From Oikopleura dioica (Eukaryota; Animalia; Chordata), in contig OU015569.1 of NCBI GenBank assembly GCA_907165135.1, positions 5,828,001 to 5,892,000 of the forward strand: a stretch of DNA of 64,000 nt, read 5' to 3'. Below the pieces are notes generated by a model, which was not told the DNA's origin, made no database searches, and saw only the letters and a list, made by a program, of their open reading frames with translations. Position 1 is the stretch's first letter. The number at the start of each line of letters is the position of its first letter. The position numbers and the translations under genes are program-made. Shown piece by piece: positions 1,795 through 25,779 of this stretch.

Positions 1795-3219
1795 TTAGTC
1801 CGAGTCCTCTGCGAGGACAGTCTGGCGACTTTGGAATGAGTATTGAGAAGCTGTATCTTCCATTTCTGAATCCATCATTCGGCCTCCGACATTTCGTTTA
1901 ATGCCGTAAAGAGAAGCGTCATTTGTTGAATCGTCGCTAAAAACGTAAATATAAAACAGTGATGTTTTAACTACTACCTGTCGGAGCTATCGCCGAAAAG
2001 CAAGTCCGCTCCACTACGGCTATTATTTAGCGACGCGAATTGACTAGAACTGGGCTGAAAAGAAGGCTGTTCAGGCTGATATTGACGTCGATTATAGGAT
2101 GACAAGTCGTATTGATCACGGGTCTCGGTTAGCCTTGATGCGTTCAGAATATCGGCCTGCGTTAGCATGAGAGGACTCTGAAGAATCCGTAAGTTGTCTA
2201 GACAAAAGTTTAAGCATTTTTACTCTTCTTCCGCTCCCACTCGCAGGGATTATTTCAGACTTAGTAGAGTCAAGGAAGGAATCGTCGCTGTGAACACGAG
2301 TTATATTGATTGTCTTTGATATGTCCGAGCTCAGTGTGGCTGTGACAATCGAAGAGATGAAATTGTCCGACTCAACTTTGAAAACCAAGGGACAACCTTG
2401 ACCCTCTTCGAAGACCTTAATATTTTACATTCTCACAGAAATGTAAGCATAAAGGAATTGTTACTTTTACTTCAGCATCTTCCATCAAATCTTCCCATAG
2501 TTTTACAGCTGCTCGAAGCTCTTTCAATGAAAACGTCAGATGGTCACTCATCGGCTGGAAGATCTCCAACTCTTCGGATGTTATCGCGACCTGGGACTTG
2601 ACACTCGATTTGACAGTGTTTTCATCGTACGATTTGAGATGCAGTTTTCCATCATCCATGTACATAGTCGCTTCCAGAATCCCGCGAGGAAAGGTAGAGA
2701 GTTCTCCATCGATTACTGACAGTGGGCAGACCATAAATGGAACTCTTTCCTCGAGGTCGAAAGTAGAAGCGAGGTTGTCCGGGTCATACACTTCGAAGTC
2801 GTAGTGTTTCGTCCAATGTTTCGTGCCGATGAATTTGTATGAAAAATGTTCCGCCGAGAAGTCGATTTCGATTTTATCAAGGAATTTCGAGATGTTCATA
2901 GCTGAAACTTTGATCAAGTAGCGCAGCGGGAGACTGATCTTGACATCATCGCAATACACGGATGTTTGTGATTGCGAAGTGTTGTAACTTTCGCTTATGT
3001 CGAAGAACTCGGGGGTAAGAATCATTTGCATACAAACTGATCGGGAGATATTTGACGTTTGAAGCTCAAATGATTGTTACGAAATTACATTGGAACTCAC
3101 TCGATTACCTTTAATCCTTGGACGTCATACGGCTCGATTTGAACGTGAGGACCAATTTTGACGAGGGTTTTTAGCGTTTTTACGAACTCCGTAATATTAT
3201 AATCAGGGACGATCCACAT
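1795..3219 (-). CDS. RAD9: RAD9 subunit of the 9-1-1 checkpoint clamp
   Basis: N-terminus FVKTLKTLVKIGPHVQIEP / SNISRSVCMQMILTPEFF, internal LTFSLKELRA, and C-terminal VLAEDSD* matching the RAD9 tail (PVLAEDSEGEG). Confidence 0.8.
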
Positions 3220-10303: not shown

Positions 10304-11360
10304 TCAAATGGACTTAATGCCCGATACAGAACAAATTGTTTCGAAACTGATCCAAAAGGTAAGAGACCATGGACCCATCCGCAACCAGCACGGTAAAAAC
10401 CCCTTATAAAGGGAGAAAAACCCTTAAAATCGGGATTAATATCAGCCCAACGTGGCATCGAATACCTTCATTTTTTATCGCTTGGAGCAAACAATCCATA
10501 CTTCCTTTATAATAAACTCCTATGCCATTTTTGTCGAGGGGCTGATTCATTATTCGCGTTTTTATGACATCAGCTGGAGTACCAAGGATTGCAGAGACTA
10601 AGCCAGCAGACATGGAGGCCAAGAAGTAGGTGAAATAGGAATCGGTCAGCCCCCATCTTAGGTCAGTTATAAATCATTCTTAGGACAACGATAATACCTG
10701 AGGAAAGTGTTCTTGGAAGTATCATACGCGGTGAGATCACCAAGATTGACTAATGCAGCACGCTGCGCATTTGGAATAGCTCCAGCCATAAACGCTCGCC
10801 ATCCACCTGCTCGCAAAGTGCTTTTAAAAAAGGCTGAGAATTGGAGTTTATCAACAGTCGGAGGCAGCCCTTGAAGACGTCTCTTCCCTTCGTTTTGCAT
10901 TTTAACCTAAGACTTTCAACAGATCTTTGATAGAAGAATCGAACCTTGATGAGATCGAACGGATTTGAGACGACTTGCGCGAAGGCGCCACATGACATGC
11001 CAAGGACAGCTGTGGAAAAAAGAGAAGGACGCTCGCCGAGGTGCGGTCTCAATGCTTGATAGCCACACATTCGGATGCCCGAATACGGAATGTGTCGATA
11101 GATTGCAGGAGACATGCCAAAATACAATTTACTTATCCCTTCTTTAAGCACGACTTCTTTGCAAACAGCGAAAAGACCTTGTTTCCGACCATACTGAACA
11201 TTTCTCTCGCCTTGAAGTTGTAGGCGAGTCTTGGCTACGCAAGATGTTCATGGCTTTTATAAAAGAAACTCTCTTCACCTAGATCAAGAGGATAAGTAGC
11301 GAACTCCGCACAACAGGCTCCGCCTATGCTGCTCAAGTAACGAGTCGTAAAGTCATTCAT
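10304..11360 (-). CDS. SLC25A27: Mitochondrial uncoupling protein 4-like carrier
   Basis: [86 protein letters not shown]. Confidence 0.9.
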
Positions 11361-13021: not shown

Positions 13022-16000
13022 TCACCAGTAAATGCACCATCCGGTATAATGCTGACATAAGTTTTCAATATTACGCGCTTCGTAGATAAGCCTGTCAACC
13101 TGAATGAAACACAATAAAAAAGAGAGTTTAGGTCAAGGTCTATTACCTGATCTTTCACCGAGAGAGTATTCGTATTTTCGTCTACTTCGTTGAAGTCTTT
13201 TCCCTCTAACTTTGCGGTTACCCTTTGAATCTTTACTTTCGCGTCATCGGCTTCCACCGATATTTGACCATGCTTTTGGACCCGGCGATGCTGACTTTCA
13301 GCGACGACGGGGTCTATTTTATTTGTTGATAATTAGTTAACGAAATTTTAATACCGTTAATGAAGGCTTCCAGAACAGCCAGAATGGACTCTTTATTTGA
13401 CCTGCACATGTCCATGCTCTCGAGGCAGATTTTCTTAAATGTTCCGTCGACGCCCGTTACTTCCATCGCATTAACCAGCATTCTTGTCAGTCGGAATGGC
13501 ACTTTTTCCGGCACATGTTCTCGCTTTTAGCAAGTTAGAATTGTAGGTAAAATGCTCACTTTTACCTTCATGGCGTTTTCAAAAGAATCGCCGAAATCAA
13601 TATGCGCAATCTTTCCAGAAGTAGTGATGATCAGAATGTTGCTCACGTGTCGATCGCCTAATCCTAGTATGTATCCGACCATACTCATCATGGCCAGGGA
13701 ACAGACAAAGTTCGTCCTGCGCTCAAACCAAATGTCAGCAGACGCCGACTGGAGCCATAGAATTCGCGCTAGATCGTACCCTCGGTCTTCAGTGACCTTT
13801 TGAACGTATTGGAACATTTCAACTTTTTGGAGAATTGAACAGTTTTGAATCGCAGAATCTAAAACTGCCTTTAAACCATCTGACCAAGTAATTTTTTGTA
13901 CCTTGAGGTAATCTTTCTTTTTCATGCTCCTTTTCTGGATGAGGTGTAACGTTTAATCGTTTTTGACGGATCCACTTGAGCAATTCATTGATTGTCTCTA
14001 GAGAAACAATCATTAAACCTAATCAACGTTGATTTCGAACCAGAGTTGTCTATCCATCGGACGAGACCACTTTGAAGACCGTTCTCATTAGTCATAGGGA
14101 TAATTGAGTATTTTATAACTTCGATGTCTTTCTTTCTCAAATTATTGTTCATCTTGATCAAACTATTCATAAGGTCGAATAACTGCATCACGCGCTCATC
14201 GAGTCGCAAGTCCTCCTTCCCTAAAAAGGACATGTTAAATACAGGGTAAAAAGTGGACATTAACCTTTGAGCAAGAATTGGTGACGCTGGCCGTCAGAGC
14301 CATTGATAAATATTTTCCTAGGTTTCTGCTTCGATTTGAGAATTTCAATTTCAGAAGCGACAGAATGGATTCTGACGAGATCCATTCCTGGCTGATATGT
14401 TCCCGGTATTGCCAGCTCCATATCTTTGACTTCCAGTAGTTTTGTTGAGACCTAAAAAACATAAGTTTTACATTTCAAGGCAGAAAGTAACCTTTTTCAA
14501 ATCCAACTTCGTCATGCCGCTCGCTTTATCCTTTATCTTTCGTTTAATTTCCTGATACTTCCTCATTAGATCTTCAAGATCATTTTCTGTTTCATCTCCA
14601 TTCAAAAGTCGTCTTTGAAAGATATTAAGTAAAATGGGCGTCTCAAAATAAAAGAAACCTGAGATGACGATCTGCACTGGTGATGTTCTCGTGGAAAGTG
14701 CTTTTGAACTCCACTTCAGAAAGATTTCTAGTTTGCTGCGTATTTAGAACCATCTCATGAAGACCGCGCATTCGTCGCTTTATGTATTCAATCTTTTGAC
14801 GCCTGTCGAGCTCCTGGTTGTTCTGTTGACAATAGAACTTTTGTAAGATGTCTAAAAATCTTATTACTGCATCAAAGAGTTCGACAAACCTTCCAAAGCT
14901 TCATTCCACTGATCAATCCACAACATCGCTACCGAAACAAGCTCCGTTGAAATCATTTCAGCTTCTTTAACGAGATTCCTAAAATTTCGAGTAAGAGTTT
15001 GTGATTTCGCGGTCAAGTACTTCGAATGATCACGAATGCGGTTAATGATACTTTTGGCGAGATCGCTTTGACGTTCGTTTTCTTGGGTCGCATTTTTCTG
15101 GGCATAAATGAGCGACCAAAGTATCCCTTGAGCATGCTTTTCTCCAATATGCGAGAGAATTTCTGAAGGTTGGCTAATTAAATCATTTTTATTTGAACTT
15201 TTACCTGGAATGTTATCAACTTTCTTCATATCCATGATGGCGATTAGCTGTGGAACAACTTTTAGCCAACGCTCTGGATCGCAAGAGAGCGGTTCGTTTC
15301 GAATAGTCTCTAATAACCGTCCTTCACTCGCGTGCATAAATTCAGACGTCTCTGCGTCTTCAAGGTCCTTGTTGATTTCAGCCATGATATTCAATATACG
15401 AAGCATATCCTGTAGCACTGATTTTTGTGAGAGCTTCACAGACTCGTAGAAATATTTGAGAGCATCCACGGAGAAGTTCGCGATTTCTTTGTAAATCGGT
15501 GATCGAATCTGCTTGAATAGTTCCGCTGCTTTTTCCTGATCGTCTTGACTTGAATTTTCCCGTTGGAGTTGAAGCTGTCTAACTGTAAGCGCGTCCCCTT
15601 CTCGAATGCGACGGACAGAATCCAGAGCGAAATTGGCATACGAATGAACTGCTTTATATCGTCTTTTGATGAACTCACGGCTTTGCGCATCTTTTTTATT
15701 GAGGGCGTCGATGGCTGTCATGTACAGGTCTTTGATCTCACTCACTCTCTTCGTCAGAATCGGAATTTGATTCGGCTGAGGAACAGTCGTTCTCCTCATT
15801 TCTGCCTGCCTACAGTAAGTCATCGCTAATACTATTCTTTCGTCGTCGGACATACGTTCCCGGTCGCGCAAATCCTTCAATCTGTTTTTCAGAGGTTTCA
15901 AATCGTCACACAACCGCGTGATAATTTGAATGCCCTTGTCTTCTGATTTAGGTCGCACTTCCAAATCAGGTATAGCAACATGCTTAACGTATTTGTAAAG

Positions 16001-19000
16001 CGCTCTAATTTTCAACGGGGAAATCTTCAGCGATACTTGTCGTCCTTGTATATTCTCAACAAGCCCCGGGAAACTCAGCATTTCAACATAATTCCAACTA
16101 TCGATGTTAGGCAATATCTTCTTGATTGTCTGGCGTGCGATCTCTGTTCGTCCAGATTTGGCAGCAAGTGACATGAATTTAAGCATTGATCTTTTTCGGG
16201 TGATTACACTGTGAATACTCTATGATCACAAGACTGTTATTTGTTTATTGAATATCTGTAACATATGGGTAGATGCCCTCCATGACTTCGGGAAGTCTGT
16301 CTTGACTATATAGATAATAAACCCAGTAGATGAAACTAAATAAAACGAAAGAAGAGGGAAAAATAATTCGGGAGAGATTATCAACAGAGCGAGCGAACTC
16401 TTTGTAAAATGTTGCTCCCAACGCCAGCTCTTTTTCATTAAGGGTTGTGTTCTTTGGCACAGCAACTGGAGTACTGACATCCATCATAGGTATGCTTCTG
16501 AAAACACTATGGTCACCATTATATTGACTTCAATTGATAGAACCTTCTACTAAGCGATGCGTAGTTAGAAAGCGGAAGAAGTTGCGACTGTGAAATTGAC
16601 TGAGGCATATCTTGGCCGAATCCCATGAAGGAAGAACCATACGGGCCCGAAACAGGTAAAGTTCTTCGTTCAATCCGCTTCTTTTGGAGAATTTCGAGAA
16701 AGCCAGTTTTCTGACGTGAGATGAAATTGACCGCAGCATATTCTAATAGAGCCGCAAAAACGAAAAGCATGCAGAAAGACATCCAAATGTCTATAGCTTT
16801 TATATACGACACCTTCGGCAATGAACTGGATGCTCCTGACGTCTGTGTCGTAATTGTAAGGACAGTAGTGATGCCTAGAGCTGTGCGCGCAGGGGCTGCC
16901 TCAATATTGATCCAAAAGGAAACCCAGCTTAGGACAACGATGAGCAGCGATGGAACATATAACTACAATTATCAAGTAAATGTTATAAATAAAGAAATTT
17001 ACTTGAATAAGATAGTAACCCATTTCACGTTTCAAAACAAGAATTCCTTTTAAGCAAGTGAAAGTACCAGTATTGTAAACTTTGTCACAGTTGGCTTAAA
17101 TTGGGTCAAATGAAAGAATCATATAGAAAATAATATCAAGTATCGACCCATGACAATATGATAGCCTTTGATAGAAAACTGGGGCAAAGCGAGAGTCTTG
17201 GATAGCTGGATAGCATCAGTATCTTGCCACACAAAAATCAAATCACGCTTGTCGTAACCGAACGATTCCACTAAAAATAATCGAGAAATCGCTTAGGAAT
17301 GATATTACGTTCTATATTGCATTGCTGCAGATCCATCGGGAAGATCAAAAGATCCATGTAGCAAGCCAGTGTTAGTGTTATTCTTATTGAAACGTAAATG
17401 TCACCATTTTTGTAGACCCTGACTAGCTTTTTATCGATTTTACGAAAAGGTTGCAATTTTTGAAAGTGATTTAGTTTTGAGTTTAAATCTCTTCCTTGTT
17501 ATCTTGAGTGACTTTATGAAAGTTGGCTTTCTTCTCGTTGGCGAAAAACAAATCAGGAAGCCAGAAGCGTTGGAGAATAGAGGGATGCACGACAAGGGAG
17601 TCATCATCAAAAAGCCCATCGTAACGTAAGCGAGGATCATTCCACCGCATACGGAGAAAAACATTCAAGCGATAGTCCATCGTTGTTTCGGCGATCGAGT
17701 CCATTGAATTGACAAAAATATTAATCGAAATGTTTGAAGGCCGCTGTTTATCGTTCGGGCGTATTTTATTATCATAACCCTGTAGAATCCGCTCAAGTAG
17801 AAGCGTCGGATTTTTAGAGGGCGGTATGGTCGGCTGTCTATCGTTATAGCCTGAATTCTTAACAGCGCTACGGATTTGGGCGCAAATGAAGGCCTACCGA
17901 AAACGATCCTCGATTGCTTTCGTAATCATATTCTCCAAAGGAACGGCCACGAGTATTTTCTTGACTACCATAGTAATCAAAATTATTTCTCCCTTGATTT
18001 GCAGTCTGTATATTTCTGTCATACTCTGCGGATGAGCTATATGAATCGACATTTCCGTAGGAATCGCCAGACGGGCGATAGCCATTGCCTTGCGAACCTT
18101 GAAAAGGACCCCGATTGCCGTTTCCGTAGTCTTGAAAGTTACTCTCTCCATAACGATTTTGATTTCCGTAGTCTCCAGTGTTTCCATATCCTCCTGTGTT
18201 GAAGTTGCTCATTCCAGTATTTGAGCTTTGCTCATTATACGAATTATCTATCGAAAATTAGCGAATGTATAAACCCGGCCTCACCATATTTGTTTCTTTG
18301 CTGATTAGTGTTCGACCATTTGTAGACAGCTAATGCCTCCGAAAAATATAAAAGCAAAAATCTCATTTTCTCGTTTTCACAAGTACAGTCTAAATCTGAA
18401 GCGCAGAAAAAAATAACTGATTTAATTAATTAGCGCGATTAATCACCCGTTCCTGATATTAAAGTGCTCTTCCGTGTCATCCCTGGGGATAACACCGTTG
18501 TTTTGTTGTTTCACTAATGAGCGGAGAAGAAGAATTTTCTGCCATTCTTCGATGACCAGTTGAACTCCATCTACACGACTGCCATCATCAGCTGTAGTTC
18601 CACATAGTCGACTTTCCCACATTTCTTGAATTGCGATCTGCCTTTGTCGATTCGCCGTCCGATGAACGATAACTTCTTCGAGCTCTGAGCAGAGTTGCGC
18701 GTTGAAAACAGTTACGTAAACTCTTGAGTAGTTTTTGTCTTGCATTGTGAGGGATGTTTCTAGCTCTTTACGAGCCTCGATTGTCCACTTTTTGCGTCTT
18801 CGTACTTAGAGTTCTGCACTGAATGGACAGCTCTATAGAAAGCGCCGTCGAAAGAATTAACGGGGATAATTTGGTGAAGACGCTGAAACTCGTCCCAGTT
18901 TCCCAAATGCCAAGCAGCTGTTGTTCCAAGTTTTACAGCATCAATTTTCTGATCCTCAATCTCTTCATCAAACTCGTATACCTTCGTACATAGCTCGTCC

Positions 19001-22000
19001 CACTCTCCAAGAGCCTCTAAGCAGCGCATATAACCAAGTTTGTCATACGGATTGTCATTCCCATCGGCATAAAGTGTCTTTGCTTCCTCCCATCGATTAA
19101 GCTTCTCGAACCACTCTGCACTGACCGTAATTTCATTCCCCTTTGCGAATTCAAGAACTCCCTCAGCAGCTTCTTGCTCACCTAGCTTCTGGAAACTCTT
19201 TATGAGACTTTCGGCGATTTTGCGTTCCTTTTCTTTATTATCTTTTTCGCTAGTTTTGTAGAGAAATTCCATCTCTCGATAATGCAAAGCCTTTGCATAT
19301 GCATCTGTTCTTTCTGCACAATCCGCGAGCTTGCCGATTCCGTTGAGACCACCGAAAGCCTTAAGGGATCCTCCTGGTTGGTCAAGTCTCTCTTTGTCGA
19401 TATCAGACAATTCGAGGAAATGAGCAAGATCCAAGAAAAATGACAGGATACCTCTTGGAGGATCGGTGTTCTTGCCATCGATGATTTTCAGTAGACCTTT
19501 TGTGATATGATCTCGATAAGGTTTAATAGGATCTTCTGGAATTCGCGTTGCTTCGGAACCATCAATTTGAAGCTCGCGAACAGGCTTAGGCTCTGCCCAC
19601 ATAGCGTAAAATGAGCAATTGAAGATGATCAAATTTATAGGAGTGTTATAAATCCGATCTATTCCTCGAAGACCGCGGATAACATCAGATTTGCTATGGC
19701 TCAAAAACATTTGCTGATTCGTACTTGCAAATCTTTGAAATCTTCAGGGGTTTGGCAGTCAACTTCAAACTCTTCTTTGAGCCAATTGTAATGGGCAGTG
19801 TCATGCTCGTCCTCACCCTCCTTAATCATCGATTGATCGAGAGAAAAGTCATTCTTCAGCGCTTGATCCTCGAAGATCATTTCAGGATCTTCAGATGGCT
19901 TCCATAGACTTCGAGTTCTCATTTGGAAGTAATCATCGTATTCGTCTTCCCATAGATTGAAGTGGCGCATTCCGCTACGCATCGACCTGAGACATTTTAT
20001 CGCAGTCTCTCGAAGGACATAGTCGGTTGTCAATTTAGAAGGATGATCGCCATGATTTTTTATAATGGTATGCTTGTTTGCGGCGACTTCGTACTCCAAG
20101 GCGATAAGAATCGCTTCCGAGAGAATCATAAAGTAATCAGGCATTGCAGTACGTACAATGCGTGCCTCCAGAACGACGAGTATTTCACCTCTGAGTTGAT
20201 CCGAGGACGTAGCGCTCTGCAGCATCGTTGCTAGCGGACGTAGAAGGACAGAATAATGGGCTTCGATGTAGCCGAATTTTCCTATTGCTCGGACTAAATA
20301 AATCGTCGCTTCTTCGTCCTGCGGATCGGTAGATGACTTAAGCTTCTCGAAAAGCTCGAGGATATACCGGACAGCCCATCCCATGTAATCCTTGAACTCG
20401 TATTGAAGATTGTAAGCCGCCTGATAGATAAGCTGAGCGAGTTTCTTCCGCAGAGGTGCGTGGCTTATATCTTTCTGTGTATCCATTGTTTGTCGTATAT
20501 CGTTCATAAAGGGCAAAACGCGTCGACGCATTTTCTGCAGAAGCTTTTCGAACAGACCGAGAATGTTTGATTTGATGTCTTTCTTTGCTGAGGGATCTTG
20601 TGCGATGCGATGTAACTCTGGCATTACTTTTCCTAAGTGAGGGAGGATATTTGTTCCAGCCCGTTGTATAAGCAGATCAAGAGAATGAAGAGGAGCAGTA
20701 ACATCGCCTCCATGAGAGAGTTTGGCTTTTATTAACTCAACAGCAACCCTGATGATGAATTTCTCGTCAGGGCATCTGCATTCGTTGACAAGCATCTCAT
20801 TTATACTCGTGAATCCATCTTGCTTGTCATTCTTACTGTTGGAACGGCGCTTCTTAGTTATTTCCTTATACTGGTACGGATCTAGTGCTCCCAGCCGACC
20901 AATCATTCGCAGGGCCTCCTCATTAATTTCATGCTGCATTGTTTTCTTATCTGCAGTTACCAAGGCTAACATGTCATCCATAAGCTTTCGGTGCTTGAAA
21001 TAGGGACTAATAACGTAGTTATGATGCTCGATGAGCGACGAGAGACAACGAAGTGCGGATACTTTCACAGTTGGCTCAGTTGTTTCAACCAACAGTCGGT
21101 AAATGAGCGAAAAGAAACGATTCAGGGTGCCTTTTTCTAGTCGTGGACCGTTGACAGCAGATATTGCGGATAGACAGTCAATAAGAGTGCATGTCATTCG
21201 AGGAGGGTAGCTTTGGACGTATTCGTAAGAGAGTAGTGGTTCAATTTGACGAATGGTGGGGTCAACGAAGAGAGATAACTGGGCCTGGTTTGCGTGACGG
21301 AAGAGAACCTAAGACATTTGTAAGACAATTTTAAAACCAAGAACCCAAAAGGGGAACATGGGGGTAAGATCGCCAGGGCTTGCTTTAGAGCGGCTTTCCA
21401 CGGTCATTGGGGCATGAGTGACCTCACGGCCAGGATAATCCGCTCACCGAAGTAAGGCCTTCAATAAAAGAAAAATATTTTTAGATACTTCTATTGAACC
21501 CCTTATGGTTTCTAGTGGATATCACTAGAATGCTTTTTACCTCCAAAAGCCTCGCAGAAGCTTGATCGGGCATCTGCAATTGTGTCCACAGATCATTTAT
21601 CATCATTCTAATGTGTGGCATCGTCTCTGCGGCATTCATCGCATTCAGTCGTCCAATGATTTCCATCACGGCTTCTTGCACCTCCAGTCTGTCTGTGAAA
21701 TTCTCTTCTTTTATCGGATACGGCTGGTGAATCGCGTTCATGATCCGCTCCAAGTTATGTTGATGAATGAGATATGCATCGAACTCGGGCTTCAAGGAGC
21801 GGTAAATTGCTAGCTTTAGCTGAGTCGATTGGCTTTCCTGCCTGTATGGAATGATCGTATCAGCAATTTGTAACAGTTTTCGGATAATATTAGAAATCGT
21901 TGTTTCGCCAACAAGATTGGGTCCACAGGTGGAAGAATGGATGATGAAGAGACGCAAAACCCGAGTTACTGCTTTAGCGGCAGCGATTTTCACCTGAATT

Positions 22001-24209: not shown

Positions 24210-25305
24210 TTAGACCAAGTCAATTAAAACCACATCGCCGTCATCTGTTCCAGCAGCAATTTTATCCCCATTTTTTGACCATGCCACTTAAAATTGAAAT
24301 TGGGGATCGAATAGTTGCACTTTGTAACTACCTGAATTAACATCGGACAGGACAGCGACGGCGTCGCTGCTGATCCATCCACCCTCAGACTGCTGCAGTA
24401 ATCTTATTTTGTTATCAGCACAACCAGTGACTATGCCCCTCTCGCCCCAGTCGACAGAATAAATAGTTCTCTCGTGAATGCCTTGGATGTTAGCTTCAAG
24501 TTCGAGTTTTCCGTTGTTCATCGCCCAAATCCGCACGCTTCAAAGTAAATTTTCTTTAAAAACATTCCCGAAAAGTAGGCTTACCACTGATCACTACCGG
24601 CAGTTGCTAGTTTTAAGCCATCGGGAGACCAAGCGGCGCACCAAACGGTATCTGTGTGTCCTGTCAGCGTTTGCACGCAATCCCATTCGCCGTCATACTC
24701 TTTGAACAATTTCACTGTCATGTCGTAGGACACCGAGACGAGAATGCAATCGTATGGGTGGAAGCAAATATCTATTATCAATTTACGCGTCTATGATCGT
24801 CAATGCAAGAGGGAACCTTTCACATCTGCGCTATGAGAAGTGATAACGCCAGCACACTCGTAGTCCCCGTCTTCCCAGCACTCCCAGACCCAGACGGATT
24901 TATCACGCCCGCATGTGGCGAGTAAAGAGCTGTCGGCAGACCAAGAAATGCTCTTCACTTCCGACTCATGACCTAAACTGCACATTCAACTCTATTATGA
25001 GATCGATTAATTGAACCTTCTAGCTCAGCGTACTCTTCGAACACGCCGTTCTCCAACTTGTAAATGAGCACTTTTCCATTAAAACTACAGATTGCCAGCT
25101 GTTTTCCATCAGGCGCGAACTTTACTCTTCTTACCGTCCTGTCCTGCGCAAACGAGTCAACTGGGTTCAGATTTTTATCCCACAACTTCAACGAGCAATC
25201 CCCACTGGTCGACGCTAGAATGCTGTCCTTGAGACCCCATGCGACACTCCAAACGCGATCTTTGTGCATCACCTTCGACTGCGCGATTTTCAACTTCGTC
25301 TCCAT
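24210..25305 (-). CDS. CIAO1: Cytosolic Fe-S cluster assembly WD40 protein CIAO1
   Basis: [22 protein letters not shown]...[36 protein letters not shown]. Confidence 0.9.
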
Positions 25306-25779
25306 CTTAATCACCGACAGCTGTTAATTGTGAAACCTCTATAAGAAAGAGTCACAGTCTCAGGTTGAAATTTTAATGAGTGACTTTAAAGAAAGCGATT
25401 GTTGATGCATTAAAAGACAAGATTATAAAAATTGCGAGTTTATTTATTCTCGATTTCAATGAAATAATTTTATTGGGAATCCCAATTTGGGATAACAGTT
25501 ATCCAGTCACATGATTTAGCGTCCAATTTTTGTAAGAAAGTTGTGGAAGTGATTGACGAGCGCAAATAGCACCAGATCTATTGAAACGGTAATATTTCCA
25601 AGCACGCAATTTGAAATGATATTTGTTCGGAAAATATTACAGAGAAATTAAAAATTTGGGCGAAATCATGATTTGAAAAATAAAAAAATAAAAGAACAGG
25701 AATACACTGCTACGGTTTAGCCAGTGGGAACATCGTGGCAGACATAGATGAATTTGCCCTTGAAAAAAGTAGAAGGTAG

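Follow-up and report, generated by a model that had tools for sequence, protein, structure and literature searches.

The TOR kinase gene of Oikopleura dioica carries, within an intron that interrupts its coding sequence, a complete gene for a glycine-receptor-alpha-like subunit (GlyR) in the same orientation. The stretch of DNA analysed here, referred to as the window, comprises 64,000 nucleotides (nt) of contig OU015569.1 (GenBank assembly GCA_907165135.1, positions 5,828,001 to 5,892,000 of the forward strand). On its minus strand, the FAT domain of TOR is split by a gap of ~2.26 kb, and this gap holds the intact GlyR-alpha-like gene. The two form a true same-strand intron-nested gene pair, which recurs in related larvacean lineages and across which TOR is spliced in two sister lineages. 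An earlier note on this DNA had reported a complete same-strand GlyR gene within a TOR intron, and all the features it described are present in the sequence.

The host gene was identified as TOR by its mTOR_dom, FAT, FRB, PI3/PI4-kinase and FATC domains, which follow each other in this order; FRB, kinase and FATC were recognized via the open reading frame (ORF) of an orthologous mRNA. In the ORFs of the window, positions 3-49 of the Pfam FAT profile match upstream of the gap and positions 152-342 downstream of it, so that the gap splits the FAT domain. The parts of TOR around the nest are listed below, with positions counted from the first letter of the window and a slash marking a splice junction.

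Upstream of the gap, minus strand: mTOR_dom and N-terminal part of FAT (Pfam).
18453-18745, minus strand: last TOR FAT coding stretch before the host intron, ending ...EEHFNIR (ORF; alignment with the L002 mRNA; read joint at 18453).
16191-18452, minus strand: TOR host intron, 2262 nt, GA...AG (CAG/GAACGG ... AAAAAG/ATCA; L002 alignment).
15205-16190, minus strand: TOR exon that follows the host intron, carrying the remainder of the FAT domain (Pfam; L002 alignment).
14864-16186, minus strand: 440-aa ORF with the C-terminal part of FAT (Pfam).
13527-13925, minus strand: PI3_PI4_kinase domain (domain search).

The host intron is ~50 times longer than the eleven downstream TOR introns, which measure 36-61 nt. 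The GlyR gene (18366-16245) lies wholly inside it (18452-16191), its ATG 86 nt from the TOR donor and its stop codon 54 nt from the TOR acceptor (29 nt in the sister-lineage contig L003). With the corrected splice sites, these values replace the distances of 80 and 36 nt given earlier.

Joining of the TOR exons across GlyR was observed in the RNA of two sister lineages. L002, a 5.4-kb contig from a JGI metatranscriptome, lacks eleven segments of 36-61 nt that are present in the window, which identifies it as a spliced mRNA. It reads ...EEHFNIR/SMLKF..., and its junction falls on the window at 18453/16190, where an Arg codon is split as AG/A. L002 is 97-100% identical to the genomic contig L003; its bases 2539-2564 correspond to L003 1-26 and its bases 2563-3175 to L003 2264-2875, so that the mRNA skips 2.24 kb holding all of GlyR. 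The second line of evidence comes from three bulk poly(A) RNA runs (X5-X7), most of whose reads are <90% identical to the window, covering only conserved exons and leaving the 5' end of GlyR uncovered. Their loose read ends are identical to the genomic contig L004, which assigns the runs to the L004 lineage. Six reads of X5 and X6 join TOR at 18453 to TOR downstream of the gap, the 142 nt just past the acceptor being too divergent to align. TOR exons on both sides of the nest are therefore joined in the mature mRNA of sister lineages, with all GlyR exons skipped, as the earlier note had expected for the making of TOR. Reads of the same runs are spliced exactly at the boundaries of GlyR exons 3 and 4 and of exons 4 and 5, showing that GlyR itself is expressed and correctly spliced in the L004 lineage; a contig of GlyR mRNA was not found.

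The junction supported by these transcripts uses the donor CAG/GAACGG, with GA at 18452-18451, and the acceptor AAAAAG/ATCAATG, with AG at 16192-16191. A GT-AG pair had been proposed instead; its dinucleotides are present, in frame and matched in phase, and the sites backed by the orthologous mRNA lie 6 nt upstream of its donor and 18 nt downstream of its acceptor.

18445-18446, minus strand: GT donor proposed earlier, 6 nt inside the intron and within the 5' arm of the helix described below; unused in L002 and in the X5 and X6 reads.
16209-16210, minus strand: AG acceptor proposed earlier; in frame in the window, absent in L003.

We rejected this pair (18446 and 16209) as the main junction, since L002 does not use it and L003 lacks its AG, the corresponding 18 nt of L003 carrying an in-frame TAA. 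The AG is at most a minor alternative acceptor, and the GT might serve at a low level as an alternative 5' splice site, which would add Asn-Gly. The GA donor and the GT are exactly 6 nt apart and in frame (18452-18445), an arrangement that recalls the tandem GT and GA 5' splice sites of human FGFR genes (cited in PMC7072748).

By searching the exon ORFs in public assemblies, we obtained related genomic contigs from two sister lineages and from three more distant larvacean-like species (species B to D), and found the order TOR-FAT, GlyR, TOR-FAT and kinase on one strand in every one of them.

L003 (2.9 kb): whole nest, collinear with window 18478-15591.
L004 (7.3 kb): TOR 5' part through GlyR exon 7, collinear with the window.
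JGI 18-kb contig (gene table only): FAT, ligand-binding domain, membrane domain, FAT, PI3K.
Species B (L006/L007 and L001): FAT to GlyR ligand-binding domain, then GlyR transmembrane part to FAT to kinase; L006 and L001 stem from the same sample and overlap by 201 nt at 94% identity.
Species C (L009-L012): whole order on single Tara metagenome contigs.
Species D (L014): FAT to GlyR.

This recurrence in independent contigs excludes the misassembly that had been named as a way to refute the nest, and supplies the synteny check that had been proposed for it. TOR of species B to D is only 27-47% identical to the window at the amino-acid level, and synonymous sites are already saturated between the window and L003 (see below), so the nest has persisted through very deep divergence. 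It is an old, conserved gene pair of Oikopleura-type larvaceans. In the sea cucumber TOR gene, the homologous site lies inside one exon (residues 559-601, across DLR/TWLKF), and the host intron may be a lineage-specific gain.

The split Arg codon AG/A is kept in all lineages, while the first two nucleotides of the host intron vary as follows.

Window, L003, species C, species D: GA.
L004: GG.
Species B: GT.

AG/GAA is the donor context of an abundant class of O. dioica GA-AG introns (PMC7072748). GA-AG boundaries account for ~12% of introns in this species, where 47 nt is the most frequent length of normal introns and introns longer than 1 kb make up only 2.4% (PMC4122922). With its AG/GAA donor, its AG acceptor and a junction seen in sister-lineage RNA, the host intron belongs to this class, as does intron 3 of GlyR. 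It differs from typical members, which are very short and recently gained (PMC7072748, PMC4122922), in its length of 2.26 kb and in the conservation of its non-canonical donor across species whose TOR proteins are 27-47% identical.

The nested gene comprises eight exons with an uninterrupted ORF of 599 aa, from the ATG at 18366 to the TAA at 16247-16245, which is overlapped by an AATAAA at 16249-16244. Its seven introns are 37-68 nt long, six of them GT-AG and one GA-AG.

18285-18366, minus strand: exon 1, signal peptide (gene model).
17898-18247, minus strand: exon 2, Tyr/Gly/Asn-rich low-complexity N-terminal extension (gene model; divergence comparison).
17495-17857, minus strand: exon 3, ligand-binding domain, followed by the GA-AG intron (Pfam; spliced loose read end at 17495 matches exon 4).
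17309-17426, minus strand: exon 4, Cys-loop (gene model; loose read end at 17309 matches exon 5).
17148-17270, minus strand: exon 5 (gene model).
17003-17094, minus strand: exon 6, loop C with the second disulfide (gene model).
16544-16962, minus strand: exon 7, transmembrane segments TM1-TM3, PAR anion-selectivity motif and start of the cytoplasmic loop (Pfam; structure match).
16245-16497, minus strand: exon 8, TM4 and stop codon TAA at 16247-16245 (gene model).

The exon ORFs match the Pfam families Neur_chan_LBD (E 1.9e-12) and Neur_chan_memb (E 9e-12). Among solved structures, the best matches of the ligand-binding and transmembrane exons are glycine receptors alpha (phmmer against PDB, E 1e-37 and 1e-45), ahead of GABA-A receptors (1e-18 and 1e-28) and GluCl (4e-29) in the same search. 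The translation contains a Cys-loop (C-x13-C), a loop-C disulfide and the PAR anion-selectivity motif. The nested gene thus encodes a glycine-receptor-alpha-like subunit, for which gating by glycine is predicted. With vertebrate GlyR alpha (6pxd, 5cfb, 9y7p), its best match in both the ligand-binding and the transmembrane exons, it shares the Cys-loop, the second disulfide in loop C, the ESFGY and YNTG-x-FTC binding-site motifs and the PAR before TM2. Unlike vertebrate GlyR alpha, it has a low-complexity extension of ~120 residues and a divergent cytoplasmic loop. A search of representative proteins with the transmembrane exon returned receptors of vertebrates and other animals together with concatenated mispredictions, and no full-length Oikopleura model; the closest match was P0012, on a contig of 983 nt.

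Between the window and L003, both GlyR ORFs are intact, and synonymous divergence is saturated (pS 0.76) at a non-synonymous divergence (pN) of 0.034 in the receptor core, whereas the GlyR introns are only 36-61% identical. This pattern points to strong purifying selection on GlyR. The extension, which is rich in Tyr, Gly, Asn and Asp and lies between signal peptide and ligand-binding domain, occurs in every lineage (L007 2177-2428; L009 4258-4497; L014 ~2250-2420) and evolves fast, with a pN of 0.23 against 0.03 in the receptor core. The donor of intron 3 (17494-17427) is GA in the window (AAG/GAAGAG) and GC in L003 and L004 (AAG/GCAGAG). Spliced L004-lineage reads back this boundary, and the type of non-canonical donor has switched between lineages.

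The two ends of the TOR host intron are complementary to each other. In the window, the arms pair perfectly, 3 nt from the TOR donor and 6 nt from the acceptor.

18440-18449, minus strand: 5' arm CGGGTGATTA, intron +4 to +13 (pair search).
16197-16206, minus strand: 3' arm TAATCACCCG, intron -16 to -7 (pair search).

Complementary ends of 9-13 bp were found at homologous positions (+4..+16 against -19..-5) in all four lineages for which both intron ends are available. The terminal 40 nt of each intron were shuffled 5000 times and scored by the longest Watson-Crick run, with z comparing the duplex energy with that of the shuffles.

Window: CGGGTGATTA with TAATCACCCG, 10 bp, 7/5000 shuffles, -18.9 kcal/mol, z -4.1.
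L003: TGGGTGATT with AATCACCCA, 9 bp, 60/5000 shuffles, -13.9 kcal/mol, z -5.1.
Species B: AAAAGGGTAATTA with TAATTACCCTTTT, 13 bp, 1/5000 shuffles, -16.2 kcal/mol, z -5.1.
Species C: GTGATAAAA with TTTTATCAC, 9 bp, 81/5000 shuffles, -10.3 kcal/mol, z -2.3.

Within each of these introns (2.2-2.8 kb), the 3' arm is the longest, or tied for the longest, complement of the 5' arm. When the arms of the four lineages were registered on their common core, four columns proved to have changed on both sides with pairing kept: one reads C:G, T:A or A:T, and the others went from G:C to T:A, from G:C to A:T and from T:A to A:T. Furthermore, the first 27 nt of the intron are identical at 26 positions between the window and L003, while the GlyR introns differ to the extent given above. 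With neutral sites saturated, we take the persistence of this complementarity as a sign of selection, and we infer that an intron-end helix would bring TOR donor and acceptor together.

Such an arrangement has counterparts in other organisms. In yeast 'zipper' stems and in long-range pairings of Drosophila introns, complementary segments shorten the effective distance between the splice signals of unusually long introns. The TOR intron resembles them in having complementary segments near its ends that undergo compensatory substitutions. The known stems bridge non-coding sequence, whereas the TOR loop holds an expressed gene with seven introns of its own, in a genome whose normal introns measure ~45 nt and behind a GA donor; the splicing role of the TOR helix is a prediction. 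Two other structural ideas were discarded. Masking of the GlyR poly(A) site as a conserved role of the helix does not suit species B, where the 3' arm lies ~290 nt from the GlyR stop codon and AATAAA, yet 4 nt from the TOR acceptor. A local structure in the region from donor to ATG was weak (-11.7 kcal/mol), fell in invariant coding columns and offered no usable covariation. A search of positions 15500-19500 against Rfam found no known RNA family.

The stretch between the TOR donor and the GlyR ATG, 86-235 nt long depending on lineage, carries two features that could serve GlyR expression.

18426-18444, minus strand: conserved non-coding element GATTAATCGCGCTAATTAA with homeodomain-type TAAT/ATTA half sites, overlapping the end of the 5' helix arm (conservation).
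18390-18391, minus strand: AG followed by ACTGTAC, candidate spliced-leader (SL) trans-splice acceptor leaving a 5' untranslated region of 23 nt (18389-18367; AG/ACTG conserved).

The element GATTAATCGCGCTAATTAA is unique in the window, lies within the first 27 nt of the intron and takes the general form AATTAGCG N0-2 CGATTAAT. In species C, the same two 8-mers, AATTAGCG and CGATTAAT, occur in inverted orientation ~50 nt upstream of the GlyR ATG, and none of 2000 shuffles gave a two-block match as good. Its presence in opposite orientations suits a DNA-binding site for a transcription factor better than an RNA signal. The earlier note had seen no room for an intronic promoter; with a strongly conserved DNA element, inverted between two lineages, upstream of the GlyR ATG, an internal promoter becomes plausible and GATTAATCGCGCTAATTAA a candidate part of it.

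The AG/ACTG lies 23 nt upstream of the GlyR ATG and is conserved in the window, L003, L004 and species C. Trans-splice sites of Oikopleura are unpaired AGs, usually followed by A (PMC6389100), and the acceptor that had been placed just upstream of GlyR fits this definition as a candidate. In TOR pre-mRNA, it is not 'unpaired', the TOR donor being 62 nt upstream. At the other end of the gene, every lineage has an AATAAA that overlaps the GlyR stop codon or comes after it. The locus thereby resembles the SL-resolved operons of O. dioica, whose SL sequence is known (PMC6883708), in that same-strand genes stand tens of nt apart, an AG/A shortly precedes the ATG and the GlyR poly(A) signal sits at the stop codon (PMC4122922, PMC6883708, PMC6389100). 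It differs from them in that an operon's cistron sits between other cistrons, whereas GlyR lies inside the TOR coding region with the halves of TOR cis-spliced around it, and in that the SL on GlyR is putative. GlyR and TOR reads numbered 14:10, 15:6 and 3:10 in the three RNA samples (chi-square p = 0.02), which is weak evidence of separate regulation.

Taken as a whole, the account that we favour, and regard as moderately probable, combines the conserved nest with cis-splicing of TOR over GlyR, a bridging helix, and a GlyR promoter and SL trans-splicing of its own. Full-length TOR mRNA would arise by ordinary cis-splicing from 18453 to 16190, discarding the entire GlyR gene. The helix in TOR pre-mRNA would draw donor and acceptor together, and a spliceosome tuned to introns of ~45 nt could thereby remove a gene-bearing intron of 2.26 kb while bypassing eight internal acceptors. 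GlyR would most likely be transcribed from a compact promoter of its own, situated within the first ~60-200 nt of the intron, and its transcript would probably be SL trans-spliced at AG/ACUG and polyadenylated at the AAUAAA overlapping the stop codon.

Several observations weigh against this account. The RNA evidence for the TOR junction comes from sister lineages and none of it from the window's own lineage. The sole near-identical contig from an RNA library, X1 (420 nt, marine metatranscriptome), matches 17891-18307 at 98.8% identity, keeps GlyR intron 1 unspliced and ends at the donor of exon 2, collinear with the genome; it could be pre-mRNA, excised TOR intron or DNA carry-over. The TOR acceptor of species B, seen in a single contig (L001 ~1615-1625), reads ...TTTTATTG/ATCAATG and thus ends in TG, not AG, owing either to an error in the contig or to a non-canonical 3' splice site. 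Inverted repeats of 9-10 nt are common in the window by themselves (18 pairs in 2.35 kb), so that the case for the helix lies in position and in covariation among four lineages, one of which (species B) is represented by the two overlapping contigs with 94% identity. By the time a helix spanning 2.2 kb can form, transcription has already passed the proximal GlyR acceptor, which lies 62 nt from the donor, and kinetics may therefore work against it. Finally, the ratio test counts 58 reads in all, and both the putative promoter and the putative trans-splicing of GlyR are read from sequence conservation.

Short spacings of the kind found in operons (86 nt from donor to ATG, 54 nt from stop to acceptor, 29 nt in L003) also suit a different arrangement, the RNA switch suggested in the earlier note. 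GlyR would then lack a promoter of its own, and SL trans-splicing at 18391-18390 together with polyadenylation at 16249-16244 would cut it from TOR pre-mRNA; a TOR primary transcript would end up either as TOR, when the helix forms, or as GlyR, in which case TOR is aborted. Operons hold about 27% of Oikopleura genes (PMC4122922), the conserved AG with its following A agrees with the trans-splice rule (PMC6389100), and the L003 poly(A) signal of GlyR directly adjoins the TOR acceptor, which would make the two processing events mutually exclusive on one molecule. The helix, moreover, needs the TOR donor on the same transcript and can therefore form in TOR pre-mRNA only. We nevertheless consider this sharing rather unlikely. 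The 5' splice site 62 nt upstream would be expected to cis-splice to AG/ACTG, truncating the TOR frame (R-L-Y-L-stop); the inversion of the upstream element between lineages speaks for a site acting at the DNA level; the GlyR:TOR ratio differs among samples; and a neuronal receptor under the promoter of a housekeeping kinase is biologically awkward. Direct competition on one primary transcript, with the helix leading to TOR, and SL addition at AG/ACUG plus poly(A) cleavage leading to GlyR and aborting TOR, appears unlikely. If true, it would mean that an RNA structure decides between a growth kinase and an inhibitory receptor, an arrangement that predates the divergence of several larvacean species.

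The complementarity of the intron ends could also be a relic of terminal inverted repeats, left by a mobile element or other inserted DNA that created the intron, with no present role in splicing. The intron position is absent from sea cucumber TOR, as a lineage-specific gain would have it, the GA-AG type is overrepresented among introns that Oikopleura has newly gained (PMC4122922), and the flanks resemble a proto-splice site (AG/A). Against this, divergence between the window and L003 has left synonymous sites and GlyR introns saturated or unalignable, while the arms are still complementary through compensatory changes; repeats free of selection would have decayed. An origin in inverted repeats is in any case compatible with present use of the helix, and we hold a relic devoid of function to be quite unlikely. 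Very improbable, in our view, is a split TOR, the alternative to which the earlier note had pointed. TOR-N would stop at 18445-18443, where an in-frame TGA directly follows the donor, and TOR-C would start at the ATG at 16186 after trans-splicing at 16191, with GlyR as the middle cistron and no intron spliced. An ATG 4 nt past the AG/A acceptor of the window and an AATAAA just upstream agree with such a division. For the sister lineages it is contradicted by the L002 mRNA, which is continuous across the junction while the L003 genome has the same nest, and by the X5 and X6 reads joining both sides. Species C reads SQLKF after the acceptor, with Gln in place of Met and thus no start codon, and the Arg codon split as AG/A is kept in all lineages.

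Among known systems, a close parallel is the cholinergic gene locus, where VAChT/unc-17 lies nested in the first intron of ChAT/cha-1. In both cases, a whole neurotransmission gene sits on the same strand in a host intron, is deeply conserved there and is spliced over by the host mRNA. The two genes of the cholinergic locus are functionally linked, share promoter and 5' exon, and have the host intron near the 5' end, whereas TOR is a housekeeping kinase with coding exons upstream and an intron within its coding FAT domain, and its function is unrelated to that of GlyR. Our literature search returned no more than a general remark on intron-nested genes in O. dioica, and nothing on a TOR/GlyR nest or an intron-bridging helix in Oikopleura. 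Examples of nested genes, of GA-AG introns and of long-range pairing within introns were known before; the complementarity of the intron ends at this locus is new here.

The locus offers a compact test case, replicated by nature in five lineages with compensatory changes, for the removal of a 2.26-kb intron with eight competing same-strand acceptors by a spliceosome adapted to ~45 nt. It bears on how nested genes are frozen in a genome that otherwise scrambles gene order, and on whether non-canonical donors are kept for kinetic reasons. For annotation, pipelines may split TOR or fuse TOR with GlyR at this locus.

Two further observations concern TOR and its surroundings. At ~19708 and ~18792 (minus strand, TOR coding), the window is short of one base each compared with both L002 (sister mRNA) and L004 (sister genome), as AAATG-TTTTT and GCAA-AAAG show, which breaks its TOR into three overlapping reading frames; these losses are most likely assembly indels and not real frameshifts. 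A gene with WD40 repeats (24973-25314, minus strand) lies directly upstream of TOR on the same strand, as it does in the distant species B (L006 984-1669), and a mitochondrial-carrier gene follows TOR in the window (10750-11151) and in the JGI 18-kb contig. The succession of WD40 gene, TOR and mitochondrial carrier constitutes a conserved micro-synteny, possibly an operon.

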